Positions 1 to 10,789 of a stretch of 10,789 nucleotides of DNA are shown piece after piece (the stretch's first letter is position 1; every line of letters begins with the position of its first letter). The notes beneath the pieces are model-generated. The model did no database searches, was not told the DNA's origin, and was given only the letters and a program-made list of their open reading frames with translations. The position numbers were made by a program, and so were the translations under genes. The DNA is taken from positions 1,384,365 through 1,395,153 of the forward strand of contig JAWQFM010000017.1 in the NCBI GenBank assembly GCA_033442325.1. Reading direction: 5' to 3'. This DNA is from Salpingoeca rosetta (Eukaryota > Protista > Choanoflagellata).

Positions 1-651
1 TTGCAGTTAAAAAGCTCGTAGTTGGATTTCATGCGGGGTTTCACGGTGTGTGGGTGGGGGAGGGTGTGTTTTACTTGCCCCGCACTGTTTGCGCTCTGCA
101 GTTTAATATTCCCTGGTGGCGCCTTTGGCGCGTGCCCTTGATTGGGTGTGTGTCAAGTCACGTAGTGGTGGGGCGCTGTTGGGGGCTTTACTTTGAAAAA
201 ATTAGAGTGTTCAAAGCAGGCAGTCATTTGATTTGCTTGAATAGATTAGCATGGAACAACGGAAGAGGACTTTTGGGCCTGTACTGTTGGCGTGTGGTGC
301 GGGGGTGTGGAGTGAGAAACCGCAAGGTTTTCTTATTCCTCCCTCACCACATCGGGTCTGAAGTAATGATTAATAGGGACGGTTGGGGGCACTGGTATTT
401 CGTTGTCAGAGGTGAAATTCTTGGATTTACGAAAGACCGCCGACTGCGAAAGCATTTGCCAAGGACGCTTTCATTGATCAAGAACGAAAGTTAGGGGATC
501 GAAGACGATTAGATACCGTCGTAGTCTTAACCATAAACGATGCCGGCCAGGGCTCGGTGGGCAGCACAAATGTTTCAAAGCATGGTGGCGCCATCGGGAC
601 CTTTAGGGAAACCAAAGCGTTTGGGTTCCGGGGGGAGTATGATCGCAAGAT

Positions 652-698
<47 letters not shown>

Positions 699-731
699 GC
701 GGCTTAATTTGACTCAACACGGGGAAACTCA
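1..731 (+). rRNA. 18S rRNA: 18S (SSU) rRNA gene, partial (V4 to about helix 31), truncated at its 3' side by a telomeric tract
   Basis: Universal eukaryotic SSU motifs occur in the expected order: TTGCAGTTAAAAAGCTCGTAGTTGGA (1-26), TTTACTTTGAAAAAATTAGAGTGTTCAAAGCAGGC, GTAATGATTAATAGGGAC, GGTGAAATTCTTGGA, CAAGAACGAAAGTTAGGGGATCGAAGACGATTAGATACCGTCGTAGTC, GAAACTTAAAGGAATTGACGGAAGGGCACCACCAGGAGTGGAGCCTGCGGCTTAATTTGACTCAACACGGGGAAACTCA. The canonical continuation CCAGG is absent. Confidence 0.98.
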
Positions 732-1013
732 GGGTTAGGGTTAGGGTTAGGGTTAGGGTTAGGGTTAGGGTTAGGGTTAGGGTTAGTTAGGGTTAGGGTT
801 AGGGTTAGGGTTAGGGTTAGGGTTAGGGTTAGGGTTAGGGTTAGGGTTAGGGTTAGGGTTAGGGTTAGGGTTAGGGTTAGGGTTAGGGTTAGGGTTAGGG
901 TTAGGGTTAGGGTTAGGGTTAGGGTTAGGGTTAGGGTTAGGGTTAGGGTTAGGGTTAGGGTTAGGGTTAGGGTTAGGGTTAGGGTTAGGGTTAGGGTTAG
1001 GTTAGGGTTAGGG
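731..1013 (+). repeat. Telomeric (TTAGGG)n tract, 283 bp, G-rich strand on +
   Basis: AGGG (731-734) is followed by 8 TTAGGG, one TTAG (783-786), 35 TTAGGG, one TTAGG (997-1001) and 2 TTAGGG, giving 47 units by manual count. Confidence 0.99.
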
Positions 1014-1086
1014 CACGCGAACGTCAGCGCGCATGAACGGACGTACAGGGTGAGGAGAACGGTACCGAGCATGTCGTGGGTGAGGT

Positions 1087-1186: not shown

Positions 1187-1502
1187 CCCGACGATTCGAC
1201 AAGTGGTATCGGTGGCCAGCCCATCGACCCTGGTGCAAGCAATGAAGATCGCCGAGGACGCGGACCAAGCCAAGGATGTATCCGGGACCCACTTCGCGCG
1301 CCGCACGTCAGTCTCTTCAAGCGGCACCTCCAAGTACCAGGCAAACAAGCAGGCCCCGCGACGTGACGATGGACCACGCAAGCGCCTGCCACCGCTGACA
1401 CCGGAGGAGCGCCAGCGACTGATGGCCGAGGGCGCCTGCTTCCGTTGCCGCAAGCCCGGCCACGGCTATGCTCAGTGTCCGGGAAACGGCCCGCTTCAGT
1501 GA
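1187..1502 (+). CDS. gag: Gag C-terminus (5' partial) with CCHC zinc knuckle
   Basis: LTPEERQRLMAEGA-CFRCRKPGHGYAQC matches Cx2Cx4Hx4C at 1437-1478, with the typical gypsy 'ERQR...G.CF.C' context. Stop codon TGA at 1500-1502. Confidence 0.93.
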
Positions 1503-1528
1503 GGGGTCTCGCGACCCTCCTGAAGCGG
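1481..1528 (+). promoter_or_regulatory. Putative -1 programmed ribosomal frameshift signal (slippery heptamer plus stem-loop)
   Basis: G_GGA_AAC at 1481-1487 is in correct X_XXY_YYZ phase with gag. CCGCTTCAG (1491-1499) pairs perfectly with CTGAAGCGG (1520-1528), and the inner stem GAGGG(G)TC/GACCCTC closes a TCGC loop. The -1 frame is open to 1825. Confidence 0.85.
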
Positions 1529-4500
1529 ACCACCCCACGCGAGCCACCACCCACCACAACGACAACCCCAGACACACACACAGACACAGACACAGCCACA
1601 GCCACAGCGTGCAGAGATCTACACGCGCACACGGACACAGACACAGACACAGCTACAGCGTGCAGAGACCTACACGCGCACACGGACACAGACACAGCAG
1701 CAGAGTCGTCGGACTCAGCAACCATGGATCAAGTCACTGCCGCAGCACACACAGCATTAGCCACGGTGGCAAACCTAGATGCGCAAACAAACGCCGACAC
1801 TGACACAGACACAGACATGCATTGACACTGGAACAGTGATGTCAACAACAGACACCCACACAGACCAGGACGCACATACAGACACAACCACACACACCGT
1901 CACAGACACAGCTACAGCGTGCAGAGACCTACACGCCCACAGACACACACACGCAGACACAGTGACGACGCCCGCCATAGCAACAACTGCGGGGGTAGAC
2001 CCACACAACGTCGCCGGCTCACAATCACCGCTTCCCTCCAGTGCGTCATGGAGGCCACCACCAACAACCGTGCGGAAGCCTCGACGATCCAGCCGCCTCG
2101 CACAAAAGGCGTACCTACGAGCATGGCAAGACAACCCACTGCTGGCCATGACGAGACAGCCCCCGCCAAGCCTCCGCAAGGAGCAGACCTCCCGCCGCGC
2201 GGGCGCTGCACGACCGGGACGCCGGAACGGAGATACCGATGGAGACGACGGCCAGGAGTACTCCTCCATCACCCTCACCGTTCGCACCGCACCCACAACA
2301 AGAAGCCAGCCACCGACCAACTACCTAAGCGCAGTTACCACAGCATCAACCCCGGCCTACGTTCCCCAACTACGTTTTCGTGCAACGATCAACGGTGTCC
2401 CATGCAACATCCTGTTGGACTCGGGGTGCACAACCGACGTGGTGGCCGAGGAGTTTGCCTTGAAAAACCTTAGGGTGACACAGGTACGCCAAGACACACA
2501 GGTCACGTACGGAGACGGATCCCACGTCTCCAGATCGAGCATGACAACGGCTACCCTCAAGGTGCAAGGCCTGACGACGACGCGGGACTTCCTCGTAATT
2601 CCAATTGGGGGAGTCGACGCCGTGTTGGGCAGACCTTTCCTCAAGGACTATGCTGCGCGCGTTGACCACATCAATGATCAAGTTCACCTCACAGATCCCA
2701 CCAACCCACGACAACCACTGCGTAATCCGGCACCCATGGAGCACAGCAACACAGACAAGGAACTGGCAGGCCGCGTCACTCTTCAAACAACACCAGCCAC
2801 GACACGGGACGACCGCGACAACGACCCAGCACTGTATCTGATATCCGCAACAGCAGTCGGCAAGGCGGCACGCGACCCAGACCAGCAACTGTTCCTAATC
2901 CACGTGCGTCCGGACGACATCCTCATCGACGAGCCTCAAGAACTGCCGACGCTCAAGGACCAACACCCGTTCGTTAAGGCTTTTCAAGACGTGTTCCCAG
3001 ATAAGCTGCCAGACGGTCTGCCACCAGAACGAGCAGTAGATCACAAGATTCCCACGACAGAGGACCACCGGCCTTATGCGCGCTCCCCTTACCGCCTGTC
3101 GCCACGCGAAAGGGTTGAGCTGAGGCGCCAGCTGCAGGAGCTCACACAGGCCGGCCACATTCGACCTAGCTCAGGTCCATATGGGGCGCCGGTGCTGCTG
3201 GTGAGGAAAGCCGACAACAGCCTCAGGCTGTGCGTCGACTACAGAGCCCTCAACCGTGAAACGGTGCGCGACGCGTACCCGCTTCCGCGGATCCAGGACG
3301 TGCTAGACCAGCTGGCCTCAGCCACAGTCTTCTCGTCACTGGATCTGAGATCGGGCTACCACCAAGTGAGAGTGGCTGAGGAGGACGTGGGCAAGACTGC
3401 GTTCAACACCCCGTACGGATCGTTCGAATGGTTGGTTCTTCCGTTTGGTCTCACGTCCGCACCAGGTACCTTCCAGAGGCTCATGAATGAAGTTCTTCGG
3501 GACTTCATTGGAGACTTTGTCCAGGTCTACCTCGACGATGTGATCATCTACAGTCGTAACATAGACGAGCACAAGGACCACGTGCACCAAGTACTCCGCC
3601 AGCTCCGCCGCCACCGCCTGTATGGCAAGGCGTCCAAATGCCAGTGGGCGCAAGACCAGATCAAGTTCCTCGGACACGTCGTGTCGGGACGCGGAGTGGA
3701 AACGGACCCTGACAAGATAGCAGCGGTCACCGAGTGGCCTCAGCCCAAGAACGTGCGCGACGTGCGCTCGTTTCTCGGATTCTGCAACTTCTACCGCCGA
3801 TTCGTCAAGGACTACGCATCGGTGGCCGCCCCCCTCACGGATCTCATGCACAAGGATAGAGCGTGGGAGTTCAACGACAAGGAGCGCAGTGCTTTCGACG
3901 CGCTCAAGACGGCAATGACAACGGCACCTGTGCTAGCCTACCCCGACGCAAGCCAGAAATACGTCGTGCAGACCGACGCCTCGGAGACAGCAGTAGGAGG
4001 AGTCCTCATGCAGAAGGGCCGTCCGGTTGCTTTCGAATCGCGACGATACAGAGGAGCCGAACAGAGATACGACGTCAGAGACAAGGAGGCACTGGCAATT
4101 GTCCATTGCTTGAGACAGTGGCGCCATTACCTTTACGGAGCAGACTTTGACATCAACACCGACCACAGAACATTGCAGTACCTCCAGACGCAGAAGGACA
4201 TCAAGCCGAGACACGCCCGATGGATGGAGCTGCTGTCGGAGTTTGGACGACTCGACATCCAGTACATCCCAGGCAAGCGTAATCAGGTGGCTGACGCCCT
4301 CAGTAGGAACCTCATGGACGTCAACCTCGCGACGATCTCAACCTCGTCGCCGACCAGCGCCCTTTTGGAGCAGATCCGCCAAGCAACACGGAAGATGCCA
4401 GGCCGGGAGCGCCAGCGCCTGCAGCAGCCACGTTTCAGCGAGGAAGAGGGCATCTTCTACCTCACCCAGCAACAGCGACGGCGAGTTTACGTCCCCAGAG

Positions 4501-4991
4501 ACAACCGTCTGCGCACCAAGATCCTGAAGGAGGCCCACGACGCCTCAACCCGCGGACACCGAGCAGCTTCTCAAACGCACCTGTATGTCAGCCAGCGCTT
4601 TTACTGGCCGAACCAGCTGCAAGATGCAATCAAGTATACGGCGTCCTGCGACCAATGCCAACGGAACAAGTACGACACCAGAGCCAAGGCCGGCCTTCTT
4701 CACCCGTTGCCGGTGCCGCCACACAACTGGCACACGGTATCCATGGACTTCATCACCGGGTTGCCCAGCACTGACGGCGGACTGGACGCCATACTGGTGG
4801 TCGTGGACAAGCTCTCAGAGCGCACCCACCTGCTTGCGACGACTAAGACTGTCACGGCCCAGGATACACCGCGGCTTTTCTTCAAGGAGATCGTGCGACT
4901 ACACGGGGGTGCCGGCACACATCGACTCGGACAGAGACGTTCGTTTCACCTCCACATTCTGGACTTGAGCTGTTCCGCTGTATGGGGACCA
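1487..4991 (+). CDS. pol: Pol polyprotein (spacer, aspartic protease, reverse transcriptase, RNase H, integrase), 3' partial, with frame disruptions at about 1816, 4905-4909 and 4965-4966
   Basis: Protease LLDSG (Asp codon 2418-2420) and DAVLGRPFL; RT YLDD (3528-3539); RNase H QTDAS (Asp codon 3975-3977), KEALAI, TDH and NQVADALSR; IN zinc finger H-x6-H...CDQC (about 4536-4658) and core MDF (Asp codon 4746-4748). SDRD continues in a shifted frame. The main uninterrupted ORF runs from 1779 to about 4904. Confidence 0.92.
1578..1941 (+). repeat. 51-bp minisatellite-like repeat (two tandem copies plus one dispersed partial copy) within (GACACA)n low-complexity sequence
   Basis: The core ACAGCGTGCAGAGA(T/C)CTACACGC starts at 1604, 1655 and 1914 and encodes TACRDLHAH each time. 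Confidence 0.9.
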
Positions 4992-5091
4992 NNNNNNNNN
5001 NNNNNNNNNNNNNNNNNNNNNNNNNNNNNNNNNNNNNNNNNNNNNNNNNNNNNNNNNNNNNNNNNNNNNNNNNNNNNNNNNNNNNNNNNNN
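4992..5091. other. Assembly gap (100 N; true size probably unknown)
   Basis: Run of exactly 100 N. Confidence 0.99.

Positions 5092-5144
<53 letters not shown>
5092..5144. repeat. (TG)n microsatellite, truncated by the gap
   Basis: Perfect dinucleotide run. Confidence 0.98.
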
Positions 5145-5372: not shown

Positions 5373-5520
<148 letters not shown>

Positions 5521-5586
5521 GAACACCGCCGAATATTGGTGCAAGTTTTGGGACAATTTGCACCGATTGCATCCACACGCGCAACG

Positions 5587-8500
5587 ATGGTGCTCTTGTT
5601 GCTGCTCCTTCTTCCTGCGTCGTCAGCCGCCACCCTCAACACTGGTGGTGTACAGTCAGCAGGACCTCAGGAGCGCAACGGAGCAACGGACGACGCATGC
5701 GCACGCGCCTTGCAAGCGCTGGAAGCCATTCAAGCGTTGCAGCCAGTGATCTTATGCTCGGCATCATCCTTGCAGCCACACTTAAATGAGCTCCAAACCG
5801 CGGTGCACGCCTTGTGCCCTCTGCCAGGCAACATCGCAAATGCTGCCGCGGATGCTGCTGTAGATGCTGCTGATGCTGCTGTAGATGCTGCTGTAGATGC
5901 CGCGGATGATGCTGCTGATGATGGTGAAACTGTTGTTGACGTCTCCACCGACCACCACGCCGGCTTCAGCGGCCCACAAGAACCGCAAAGGACGATACAT
6001 GCGCGGCTGAGGCGCAACACAAACTCCTCGTCCACAACAACACTTTCACCTGCAGCAGACCCCACCACAGCGACATCCACCACCACCACCGCCGCCATTA
6101 CCACTGATACGCAGTCGTCCTCATCGGCGGCGCCTGCCACAGCAACCACAGTAACAGCAACCACAGTAACAGCGGTGACGACGACAACGACAACGACGTC
6201 GGCCCCCTCGCTGCGCCAGTTCTCCTGCACCATTCGCTTGTTGCTGCTTGGACGATGCCGCCTCAACAGCCCACGTGAACCTGGACGTCCGTTCAACCTC
6301 GCCTTCAACTCGCCAGACCGCCCCGCAAGCGATACCATCACGCCCGCGGCGACGGCTGCGTCTGCCCTGCGTGATCTCGTCGCCCTGTATCAGCCGCGTG
6401 ACGTCATCTTCCGGCGAACCATCTTCTCCGCGGACATGGAGTGGGTCCTGAACAACGCCGACTGGAGCAGCGTGGAGACCCTGCGCATCGACGGCCTCGT
6501 CGCCACCTCCTTCTCCCTCAACACCCTCAACCATTTTCCAAACCTTCGCGTCCTCAACATTGGCAGCAACCACATTAACGGCCTCGCCACAACTTTGCCG
6601 AGGGACGCCACGCCGTTCATGGGGGCGCACAAGCTGGAGGTGCTGGACGCCCGCAACAACTCCCTCTTCCACCTCCCGCCCGCCCTGTTCCAAGGCATGT
6701 CGAGCCTGCGCGTGCTCAACCTCACAGACAACTACATCACATCCTTGGAGGCAGGCGTTTTGCGCGATGCAACGGCGCTGGAGCACCTCTGGCTCTCGCT
6801 CAACTACATCACCGCCATCCACCCCGACGCCCTGCAGGGCTTGTCCATGCTGCGGGACCTGACCCTCGAGGACAACCACCTCAGCACCTTGGAGGAGCCC
6901 GTGTTCCGCGACCTCACCCGCCTGGAGCGCCTCATCCTCAGCGACAACGTCATCAACGCGCTGCCGCCCAGGCTGCTCCAGCACACGGTGAACCTGCGCC
7001 AGTTTGAGGTGGTGGACTCGTTCCTGCCGTCGCTGCCGGACACCTTCTTCCAGACCACCACGCGCATGGAGCGCCTTCTTCTCTTCAACGCGCGCCTCAC
7101 CGCACTGCCGCGGGCCCTCTTGCACAACATGCCGGCCCTCGACTACTTCAGCATCAGCGGCAACCGCGTGCGCTCTCTGCACCCAGACATGTTTCGGGGC
7201 CTGCGAAACATCACCAACATTTACATCAACCGCAACCACATCACGGCCCTGCCAGCTGGCCTCTTCAGCGACCAACCAAAGCTCAGCGTCCTGGGCCTCG
7301 GCCACAACAACATCGCCACCGTGCCCTCCACCGCATTTGAGGCCAACACCGCGCTCGTGTTCCTCGCGCTCAGCCACAACAAGCTCTCCGCGCTTCCCGC
7401 CTCCGCGCTTCGCAACAAGCCGCAGCTGCAGTCGCTCTACCTGGCCAACAACAACATCAGGCGCCTCTCCTTTGCTGACGATGACGATGACAGCAGCAGC
7501 AACAGCGGCAGCGGTGGCGGTGGCACCGCGCCCTTGACCGTGCTGCCCGCCCTGGAGATCCTCGACCTCTCCTTCAACCCGATTGAGGTCCTGCCGCCCC
7601 CGCACGTCATGCCAAACCTGACCACGCTGCGCGCCATTCACCACAGCATGTCCACCATCCACATGACGCCGCTGCTGTCGCTGCGCAGGCTCACGCGGCT
7701 TGAGCTCGCCTCGGACCTGGCCCGGCCCACCAGCACGCTCGCCTTCACCGCGGAGGAGGCGGAGCACGACACGGCACCGCCAAACCTGCGTTTCTTCGAC
7801 CTGCGCAATGTCGAGCTGTCCACGGCGTTTGTGCTGTTTGCGTACCAGCAGCAGCTGCGGCTGCGCCACATCAACCTGGGCTGGCCCGGCATGAGCGAGA
7901 GCACCGCGCCCATTGCGCAGATCTGCGACCTGTTCGACCAGGAAGTGGAGTACGTTGGCTTGCACAACACGGCGTACCGGCGCATTGAGCTGTGCCAGGA
8001 CAAGCGCATCCTCTCTGTCGGGCTGGAGGACAACCCGCGCCTGGAGCACCTCACCCTGCTGCACAACCTGAACCGCCTCAACGTGTCTGGCTGCACCAGC
8101 CTCCGCGACATGACGCTGCTCTCCGCTGACATCCTGGACATCAGCGGCACCCGCCTCATGTTCCAGCCGCCACTCTGCGACACGTGGGGCACGCATGTCC
8201 TGCTCGCAAGCAGAATTCGCCTCTCCCGCAAGGCGGACCTGGCCGACGTGGGTGCACACATCCAGCGCTGCCTGTCGCAGGTGGACGTGCTTGATCTGTC
8301 CCAAAACACGTGGCTCAACCAGGCCCACCTTGTGCAGACGCCGCCTATCGTGCTTAGCCGTGCCGGCTTCTGGTCGGAGGATTTTGCGGTGGCGCTGGCC
8401 AACAACCCGCGGGTCCCCGTGCTCACCATCAACGCAGGCAAGGTGTCATGCACGCTCGAGCTTGGCAACACGCAGGCGCGCGCGCGGGAGGCACGGGCAG

Positions 8501-9353
8501 ACATCACCACGGAGGTCACATTCCAGTTCAACTGCAGGTGCGCGCAGCGGTTTGTGCAGCGCGACGGCAAGTGCGTGCCGGACGAGCTGACGCGCGGCGA
8601 GATTGCTGCCATCTCCATGGGCGTTGTGATGGTGGTGGGCGCGGTGCTGGCGGTGGTGTATCAGCATTACCGCCGCCGGCGACTCACGCTCGAGGTGGAG
8701 AACAAGACTGTGTACTCGCACCTGCTGGAGAAGGAAGAGGAGGTGATGGCGCTGAAGAAGGTATGGGAGATTGACTTTGGGGAGCTGCACCTCGTCACGC
8801 GCATCGACAAGGACTCCGAGGGCGCGTTTGGGGAGGTGTGGCTGGCACGCTGGGACGAGCTCACCGTGGCCACGAAACTGCTCAAGCGCTCCGTGCTGCT
8901 GTTTGACGAGTCGCAACGCGAGGAGTTTGAGAAGGAGGTGGAGTTCCTGCAGCGGACACGGCACCCGCACGTGGTGCGGTTCTTCGGTGCGGGCACGGAT
9001 CCGCATGGCAGCCCGTTCCTGGTGCTGGAGTTTGTGGCGATGGGGTCGCTGCAGGCGCTGCTGCGGCGTGACTTGGCGCAGGTGCTGCTGTCCAAGGTGA
9101 AAGAGCGGCAGCTGTCAAACACACGCGCCCTGTTTGTGCCGAGTACGAGTGACGATAGCAGCGGCCAGAGCACCGGAGCCCGTCGCAGCGTGGCCATCGC
9201 CGAGACGCATGACACCGTGGTTATCCGCGCGCGCGAAATGCACGCCAACGCTGCCAGCACCGGACCACGTGCTGTGTGGACGCTCAAGCTTCGTCTTGCC
9301 CAGGACATTGCCTGTGGCATGGCCTTCGTCCACAGCCTTGGCCACGTGCACAG
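5587..9353 (+). CDS. LRR transmembrane receptor kinase (TKL group), exon 1: signal peptide, N-terminal region, Thr-rich linker, LRR solenoid, Cys cap, TM helix and kinase N-lobe up to HR
   Basis: The first in-frame ATG at 5587 gives MVLLLLLLLPASSAA, a signal peptide. About 13 regular 24-aa LxxLxLxxNxLxxLpxxxF repeats (about 6535-7470) are followed by degenerate repeats to about 8310. A CRC-x10-C cap precedes the TM helix IAAISMGVVMVVGAVLAVVY (8602-8661) and RRRR. Kinase motifs: EGAFGEV, VATK, FEKEV, HPHVVRFFG, LVLEF, IACGMAFVH and HVHR. The start is uncertain if an upstream exon exists. Confidence 0.93.
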
Positions 9354-9482
9354 GTGTGTAGATGTGTGTGTGGGGGGGTGTATGGGTGTAGGTGTGTGGT
9401 GTGGGTGTGTGTCTGCCTGTGCAGTGTCTGCTATTGATGATGGTGGTATTGCTGCCTCGCTCAACTCACTCTGTCCAACCAC

Positions 9483-9560
<78 letters not shown>

Positions 9561-9570
9561 GCATATGCAG
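9354..9570 (+). other. Spliceosomal GT-AG intron, 217 bp, phase 2, splitting the Arg codon of HRD
   Basis: CACAG|GTGTGT ... (CA)n ... ATGCAG|AGACCTTAAG. Splicing joins AG+A = AGA and restores HRDLKSGN in frame. Confidence 0.95.
9486..9558. repeat. (CA)n microsatellite at the 3' end of the intron
   Basis: Perfect dinucleotide run ending 12 nt before the exon boundary. Confidence 0.97.
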
Positions 9571-10219
9571 AGACCTTAAGAGCGGCAACGTGCTGGTGTC
9601 AAACGCGCTTCGGGCCAAAATCTCGGATTTCGGATGCATCCGGGACGTGTTGACAAAGGGGCAAACACGCACAGGGGATAGGAAAGGACATGACTTCACA
9701 TCTTCGTCAACCAGCGCAGTGACAGCAACGTCAGCGACAGCAATTGCGCCAACAGCATCCTCGCCTCTGAACCCTTCGCTGACGGCGGGTGTTGGTACAC
9801 CGCTGTACATGGCGCCTGAGGTACTTGCTGGCGAGGAGTACGATGGCAAGGCCGACGTCTTCAGCTTTGGAGTGCTGCTGTGGGAGATTGCCGTGCAACG
9901 CGTGCCGGATCTGGTTGAGCAGGAGCTTGGCCCAGACTTCAAAGGCACCTACACGGCACGTTTGCTGGAACTGTTGCGGCAGGGCAAACGCTTGCAGTTT
10001 CCGTCATCAGCAGCAGCCGCAGGGAACACCACCTCCACAGACTCGCCAGATGCTGCCGACATGGATGCTACACTGGCCTGGTTGGCGAGCGTTGCAAGTG
10101 AGTGTTCTGCGGAGGATCCTGCCAGGCGACCAAACTTTGGCGGCCTGGAGCTGCGGTTGAGATCAGAGGTTCAACAACTCACTGCGGCGTCATCGCACCT
10201 CGACGAAACGCGTGCTTGA
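9571..10219 (+). CDS. LRR transmembrane receptor kinase, exon 2: kinase C-lobe (spliced product about 1471 aa)
   Basis: DLKSGNVLV, KISDFG, GVGTPLYMAPE, KADVFSFGVLLWEI and C...DPARRPNF. Stop codon TGA at 10217-10219. Exon lengths 3767+649 = 4416 nt, divisible by 3. Confidence 0.95.
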
Positions 10220-10226
10220 TTCACTC

Positions 10227-10335
<109 letters not shown>

Positions 10336-10451
10336 GCTCGTATGTACCTAGCAATAGCACAATGTCCTTTTATCGCCTTGCCAAAATAAATGAGAAGGAG
10401 AACTGCTGGAATGGGTGGTACCAAGTGGGGACATACCCATTGTTCCGATGT

Positions 10452-10452
<1 letters not shown>

Positions 10453-10539
<87 letters not shown>
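10453..10539. repeat. (GT)n microsatellite
   Basis: Perfect dinucleotide run. Confidence 0.98.
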
Positions 10540-10542
<3 letters not shown>

Positions 10543-10789
10543 AAGTCGTACCTTTTCACCCCTGGTATCTTAGGGTTACCCTTGAGAAGTTCTTGCGCCT
10601 GTGGCCTCCAAACTCATGGTCGTTGCGGAGGAAGTCGCCCATGCAAAGACGCCGCAGATGCGCAGGCATCGGCCAAGCCGATTCAAGCCTGTTTTGTGTA
10701 TTGATGGCAGAAGACGAGCCCATCTGCTCCCAAGTAATAGTTGTGTGGTCTGTATCGCATGAATAGTCAACAGTTGGAGGGAAATGACG

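Follow-up and report, generated by a model that had tools for sequence, protein, structure and literature searches.

The window, by which we mean the whole stretch of 10,789 nucleotides analysed here, is the last 10.8 kb of the 1,395,153-bp scaffold C17 of Salpingoeca rosetta (C17:1384365-1395153, plus strand), and its position 10789 is the scaffold end. A gap of 1147 N directly precedes position 1. The window opens within an 18S rRNA gene, of which an internal fragment is present (1-730, plus strand), identified by an Rfam match, by paralogue alignment and by comparison with a reference unit on scaffold C23. At the breakpoint ...ACTCA/GGGTT (727-736, plus strand), placed by comparison with intact copies, which read on as CCAGG, the gene gives way to a telomere tract of (TTAGGG)n. 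The tract spans 283 nt (731-1013, plus strand; delimited by TRF and a unit count), and A731 can be assigned to either side of the breakpoint. A non-telomeric tail of 73 nt (1014-1086, plus strand), with a 97% match to the minus strand of C10:9302-9374, closes the contig. The 18S fragment, the tract, and the tail together form a contig of 1086 bp located between the 1147-N gap and a gap of 100 N (1087-1186), which is a placeholder size, 9.7 kb from the end of C17.

A fragment of a Ty3/gypsy LTR retrotransposon (1187-4991, plus strand), recognised by its Pfam domains, follows the gap and is interrupted by a second gap of 100 N (4992-5091). Its parts are arranged as a gag CCHC knuckle at ~1438-1482, read from the sequence, followed by the protease (RVP_2, 7e-07), the reverse transcriptase (RVT_1, 1.5e-36), the RNase H (RT_RNaseH, 4.9e-34), and the integrase zinc domain (Integrase_H2C2, 1.3e-16). 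Between gag and pol lies a 51-nt tandem repeat (1577-1698). The remaining gene of the window encodes a leucine-rich-repeat receptor kinase (5536-10219, plus strand; LRR_8, 1.7e-48, and PK_Tyr_Ser-Thr, 1.4e-16 and 2e-18) and heads to the scaffold end. Long dinucleotide microsatellites are located at 5092-5144, 5373-5520, 9486-9558, 10228-10334, and 10449-10539. We treat the retrotransposon and the kinase gene as context, the former probably outside the chromosome end.

The Rfam model SSU_rRNA_eukarya matches from window position 1 onward, between model positions 613 and ~1217, with 339 bits. In the coordinates of the C23 reference unit, window 1-730 corresponds to nt ~665-1398 of a 2094-nt gene, whose 5' part falls in the 1147-N gap and whose transcription is directed toward the telomere. 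The fragment is 96-98% identical to 11 other 18S copies of the genome, with the differences limited to the expansion segments. It has its own haplotype, including a unique T at 39 and a variant block at 54-82, and its conserved core is the same as in the other copies. The window 18S is therefore a copy in its own right and does not look decayed. Copies from different scaffold ends are 2-5% apart, nearly only in the expansion segments (window 39-101, 304-340, and 571-586), and the variants are common in blocks to subsets of scaffold ends. From the sequences, this block-like sharing suggests weak concerted evolution among the dispersed subtelomeric units.

The site of the break can be read from the intact copies. 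All of them (11/11) read ...GGGGAAACTCA/CCAGGTCCAGAC across the site, and the window reads ...GGGGAAACTCA/GGGTTAGGG. After ...ACTCA, the intact copies (n=11) go on as CCAGGTCC and the window as GGGTTAGGG, and the distal 18S sequence is gone. This divergence places the break between window positions 731 (A, shared) and 732, free of any linker. The initial annotation had described an 18S gene cut mid-gene and capped by telomere repeats without a linker, and both the Rfam match and the divergence from the 11 intact paralogues bear this out. Its description of a G-rich strand directed away from the rDNA also holds, as TTAGGG stands on the sense strand of the 18S.

TRF finds a period-6 array at 731-1013 with 47.7 copies and 97% matches. 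Of the units in the tract, 45 are perfect TTAGGG and two have lost bases (TTAG at ~783, TTAGG at ~997). Our genome-wide searches covered the assembly of 55.4 Mb in 68 sequences. In it, all 37 forward-strand matches to (TTAGGG)4 belong to the window tract, which is the sole forward-strand array. In the assembly, the scaffold runs on past the tract with 73 non-telomeric bases, then a 100-N gap and another 9.6 kb, which leaves the tract in a non-terminal position. A variant unit, TCAGGG, occurs in the proximal part of the telomere on scaffold C36 (341-369 of the C36 piece) and as the first unit at a telomere junction on C23 (2142-2170 of the C23 piece), where the order is GAGTT, CAGGG, TTAGGG. 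The window junction likewise reads TCAGGG, yet the TCA there is 18S sequence.

The DNA on the other side of the 1147-N gap tells where the fragment belongs. The 2.5 kb of C17 before this gap are 90-93% identical to the spacer and 5'ETS upstream of the rDNA on scaffolds C23, C32, C5, C19, C36, and C7. With the C23 unit as the reference, the C17 spacer stretch stops 478 nt upstream of the 18S start and window base 1 corresponds to C23:5557. The stretch expected to be missing is thus 1141 nt long, compared with a gap of 1147 N. The spacer identity and the fit of the gap size make the order of spacer, ETS, (gap), 18S, and telomere internally consistent. Rfam finds no rRNA in the 10 kb upstream of the gap, as expected for spacer.

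The same type of unit recurs across the assembly. We searched with a unit query of 7.2 kb, running from the spacer through 28S nt 248, and also searched the 28S part and the 18S part separately. Spacer plus rDNA unit is present at no fewer than 25 scaffold ends; near left ends it occupies the minus strand and near right ends the plus strand. At every such end the rDNA is transcribed outward and one unit is present, in a gapped assembly in which a collapsed or unassembled tandem rDNA array would not show. The initial annotation had proposed the healed end of a terminal rDNA array. The healed end is retained in our reading, and the array is replaced by a single subtelomeric unit of the type found at these scaffold ends.

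Cataloguing the places where rDNA meets TTAGGG repeats, which the initial annotation had called for, gave four junctions at four different places, all with the G-rich strand pointing outward. On C5 the telomere joins the unit in the spacer/ETS, 842 nt upstream of the 18S; on C17, in the window, at 18S nt ~1398; on C36 in ITS2, 224 nt before the 28S, at a genuine scaffold terminus; and on C23 at 28S nt ~248. Of six junction patterns that exclude one another, four were searched (all but non-A at -4 and non-T at -6), so the catalogue stands at four or more. The first 1.9 kb of the 28S contains no telomere junction besides that on C23. The telomere arrays at C25:46-287, C30:764049-764396, and C23:1000626 lie outside the part of the rDNA unit from the spacer to 28S nt 1906.

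Comparison with intact paralogues shows that the unit and the repeat overlap at the breakpoints by A on C17, TT on C36, and GTT on C5. A summed overlap of at least 6 over three random joins has p ~0.004. The initial annotation had pointed to the shared A as a microhomology. A731 is indeed shared, but on its own this 1-nt overlap is weak, occurring by chance one time in four; the set of junctions, in turn, does overlap by 1-3 nt. Together, the different sites and the short overlaps argue for sporadic breakage healed by telomerase rather than for a targeted cut.

These results bear on two origins offered in the initial annotation, namely that the 18S is cut at a programmed or specific site, or that the rDNA is an extrachromosomal, telomere-capped molecule, which would be linear as in ciliates. 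The break does fall within a universally conserved 18S motif, with a telomerase-type addition directly after it. However, the 18S-telomere junction pattern occurs only once in the assembly, in the window, and the exact junction string has 0 matches in metagenome contigs. The C5, C36, and C23 junctions lie at three unrelated sites of the unit, and at least 11 copies are intact at the break position. The fragment lines up with the subtelomere of the C17 chromosome, where the gap size fits, and a molecule that ends at 18S nt 1398 carries no working rRNA operon and would be unable to make ribosomes. We regard either form of this explanation as highly improbable.

We infer a breakage followed by telomerase healing, with artefactual sequence on the distal side. 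In this scenario, a single rRNA unit (spacer, 5'ETS, 18S, 5.8S, and 28S) would sit beside most chromosome ends and be transcribed toward the telomere, and the window would contain the true right end of one chromosome, that of scaffold C17. A double-strand break or terminal erosion would have removed all DNA beyond 18S nt ~1398. The 3' end left by this loss (...ACTCA) would then have been extended by telomerase, primed on one or a few bases, to give the (TTAGGG)n cap. The truncated 18S would be a dead remnant, and the only function of the junction would be end protection. The 73-nt tail would be a chimeric read that extended the contig, as a natural end gives no competing sequence, and the last 9.6 kb of the window, on the far side of the 100-N gap, would come from scaffolding past the telomere and be foreign to this chromosome end. 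Overall, the window junction is likely to be real and to mark the place where one subtelomeric rDNA unit was truncated at the chromosome end and healed, with an artefactual tail and an over-extended scaffold on its distal side.

The join between 18S and TTAGGG might itself be an artefact, arising from misassembly or from a chimeric clone or read in which an 18S piece was ligated to a telomeric one, and placed in C17 by mate pairs from the repeated rDNA. The contig of only 1086 bp, isolated between the 1147-N and 100-N gaps, means that the junction may rest on very few reads, and a tract of 283 nt that is not terminal in the assembly also speaks against a true chromosome end. In addition, a second, unrelated join follows 283 nt further on, where the tract meets the C10-matching tail; since this join is in the same contig, chimeric sequence did enter it. 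The assembly was built from 454 jumping libraries and plasmid and fosmid Sanger reads, both prone to chimeras. Nevertheless, the polarity of the tract is that of a real end, and the fragment, with its own 18S haplotype, is no copy of another unit. The gap size agrees with the colinearity of the C17 spacer to within 6 nt, and three analogous junctions exist, one of them at a genuine scaffold terminus. Published fosmid mates, moreover, speak for a 3'-terminal telomere on a supercontig of 1,385 kb (PMC4054682). An artefactual junction is therefore unlikely.

The published record comes from the genome paper of Fairclough et al. 2013 (PMC4054682). In it, TTAGGG was assembled on six supercontigs, the ends were named 'aberrant or newly formed telomeres', and four of the six ends were confirmed via the fosmid mates of telomeric reads (PMC4054682). 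Table S3 lists supercontig 18 with 1,385 kb, an assembled 3' end, 5 mates, and 0 kb missing (PMC4054682). Window position 1086 corresponds to C17:1,385,450, and we take C17:1-1,385,450 as supercontig 18, with the last 9.7 kb appended later; the match in size is the sole basis of this assignment. The six aberrant telomeres are very probably the same objects as the telomere junctions described here. The paper does not mention rDNA (0 occurrences) and gives no junction positions (PMC4054682). Our literature search found no paper on rDNA-telomere junctions in choanoflagellates. The earlier suggestion that nothing of this kind had been described for choanoflagellates is thus nearly right: TTAGGG ends were published, but rDNA was never mentioned with them (PMC4054682).

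The 73-nt tail has only two copies in the genome. The other, C10:9302-9374 on the minus strand, differs by 2 substitutions and has a (CA)n run 8 nt away, in surroundings that are otherwise unrelated. The tail is probably the end of a chimeric read or clone. A contig that stops after 73 nt of two-copy sequence would fit a single chimeric read that ran past a natural end, and not a real junction covered at the 33x of the genome, which was sequenced with 454 jumping and plasmid/fosmid Sanger reads (PMC4054682). Several other origins of the tail were considered and rejected. The distal part of the window is not a subtelomeric paralogue of the start of C10, as the match is limited to the 73 nt and the remaining 9.6 kb show no similarity. 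An intramolecular junction from a 3-kb jumping library would be expected to carry sequence from ~3 kb upstream, in the spacer, yet the only other copy is on C10. The region around the 73 nt on C10 is not a repeat family either, since its many matches come from the (CA)n run, plus one inverted copy (C10:20124-20721) that ends before the 73 nt. That copy and C10:9398-10000 form an inverted duplicate of ~600 bp with 97% identity, which ends in the (CA)n run beside the tail copy. The first 10 kb of C10 are not homologous to a subtelomere block that C10:10335-17033 and C17 have in common.

Alternatively, the tract could be a real interstitial telomere. A healed 18S end would then have been fused later to a broken C10-like paralogue, or moved by a subtelomeric translocation, and the chromosome would continue with the retrotransposon and the receptor kinase gene. 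Non-telomeric sequence does follow the tract within one contig, with 9.6 kb more scaffold past it, and the tail differs from its sole other copy at 2/73 positions, as a paralogue might. On C23 and C12, too, the tract is succeeded by non-telomeric sequence, of 27 nt and 242 nt, respectively. The C12 tail (C12:1379862-1380103, distal to the array) has no second copy in the genome. It is AT-rich, unlike the GC-rich host DNA, and could be a chimeric tail of foreign DNA, for example from prey bacteria. Against an interstitial telomere, the end of the window contig 73 nt past the tract, in spite of a two-copy sequence, is unexpected at 33x coverage of a real junction, and the gap that follows has only the placeholder size of 100 N. 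The polarity of the G-rich strand caps the rDNA side only, the genome paper scored its assembled TTAGGG arrays as telomeric ends, and the assembly contains further obvious end-to-end scaffold joins. We consider an interstitial telomere improbable.

Further telomere arrays of the assembly adjoin N gaps within scaffolds, namely at C5:4192, C23:2040, C12:1380104-1380214, C7:1538265-1538313, and C30:764049-764396. Arrays with the polarity of a left end are found within scaffolds at C30:764049-764396, C12:1380104-1380214, C23:1000626, and C7:1538265-1538313, and adjoin N gaps. On C30 (at 764 kb) and C12 (at 1.38 Mb), the array is followed on its right, at a distance of 20-30 kb, by an rDNA/spacer unit that points outward, which is the arrangement of a chromosome left end. 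These internal arrays of left-end polarity look like joins of separate chromosome ends. With the outward units on C30 and C12, they indicate that scaffolding past telomeres is recurrent in this assembly. The first sequence of the assembly, at 3.59 Mb, is longer than any original supercontig (PMC4054682). In a 2025 study, Micro-C served to re-scaffold S. rosetta, and telomeres were reported to cluster throughout the genome (PMC12221973). Such clustering could favour end-to-end misjoins. The places where scaffolds pass through telomeres are relevant for synteny and for chromosome counts. Two rDNA units on C3, at 1863871-1869210 (plus strand) and 1884787-1889725 (minus strand), face each other ~15 kb apart; the pair is either real and inverted or the product of head-to-head scaffolding of two chromosome ends.

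Terminal and telomere-capped rDNA form a known class, which the window case joins in a new lineage. In Magnaporthe oryzae, telomere 3 caps a truncated terminal rDNA unit directly (Rehmeyer et al. 2006, PMC1635262), and telomeric rDNA is also known in Neurospora, Giardia, E. cuniculi, nucleomorphs, C. elegans, and Arabidopsis (PMC1635262). The S. rosetta junction resembles telomere 3 in that a truncated terminal unit carries a direct telomere cap. In M. oryzae, however, it is the intergenic spacer that carries the cap, where a ~2-Mb tandem array on one chromosome comes to its end (PMC1635262). In S. rosetta the cap sits within the coding region of the 18S, the unit stands singly, and many ends have such a unit. 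Each chromosome end of Encephalitozoon cuniculi carries one rDNA unit, whose transcription is directed toward the telomere (Dia et al. 2016, PMC4704409). S. rosetta likewise has one outward-pointing unit per scaffold end, but its copies are 2-5% apart in the expansion segments and at least 4 are shortened by a telomere. Such an E. cuniculi- or nucleomorph-like rDNA layout is not known to have been described for the closest relatives of animals.

Giardia lamblia and the ciliates offer two further comparisons. In G. lamblia, Adam et al. in 1991 reportedly found several chromosome ends at which telomere repeats adjoin the rDNA, the breakpoints being internal to the unit. The repeats there are said to be TAGGG, the rDNA to form tandem arrays, and rearrangements between isolates to be frequent. 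S. rosetta is similar in that telomere repeats abut the rDNA and the breakpoints fall within the unit. In ciliates, telomerase adds repeats de novo beside the rRNA genes of macronuclear rDNA minichromosomes. Cleavage in these organisms is programmed at defined sites, and the rDNA is complete, amplified, and capped at both ends. In contrast, the S. rosetta case is one truncated gene attached to a chromosome, with no recurrent cleavage site and no complete free rDNA. A ciliate-like programmed cleavage or free rDNA molecule is not supported, as nothing found here speaks for it.

Taken alone, the window junction is a textbook healed chromosome end and adds little. Its worth is in the set of four junctions, in which telomeres were added at four sites of the subtelomeric rDNA unit, providing sequence-level evidence of telomerase-type healing in a choanoflagellate. 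The set also documents a layout of rDNA at the chromosome ends that is absent from the genome paper. A more general picture may be drawn, in which the rDNA is carried as single, diverging units at most chromosome ends, transcribed toward the telomere, broken repeatedly inside the unit, and healed by telomerase. We give this general picture about an even chance of being right. If it is true, rDNA copy number and chromosome ends turn over jointly, and the window junction is one snapshot of this process.

Healing of this kind would call for a telomerase. A 2017 survey found no TERT orthologue in S. rosetta or Monosiga brevicollis, and none in choanoflagellates (PMC5405514). In the assembly, the Pfam model Telomerase_RBD (PF12009) matches C5:174989-175177 on the plus strand with 56.4 bits (E 1.3e-13), and 0 of 14 control genomes match. 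This match contrasts with the published lack of a recognisable TERT in choanoflagellates (PMC5405514). A weak N-terminal piece lies 500 nt upstream of the Telomerase_RBD match, and the locus as a whole (C5:174387-175177, plus strand) is, judged by its domain content, a candidate TERT-like gene.
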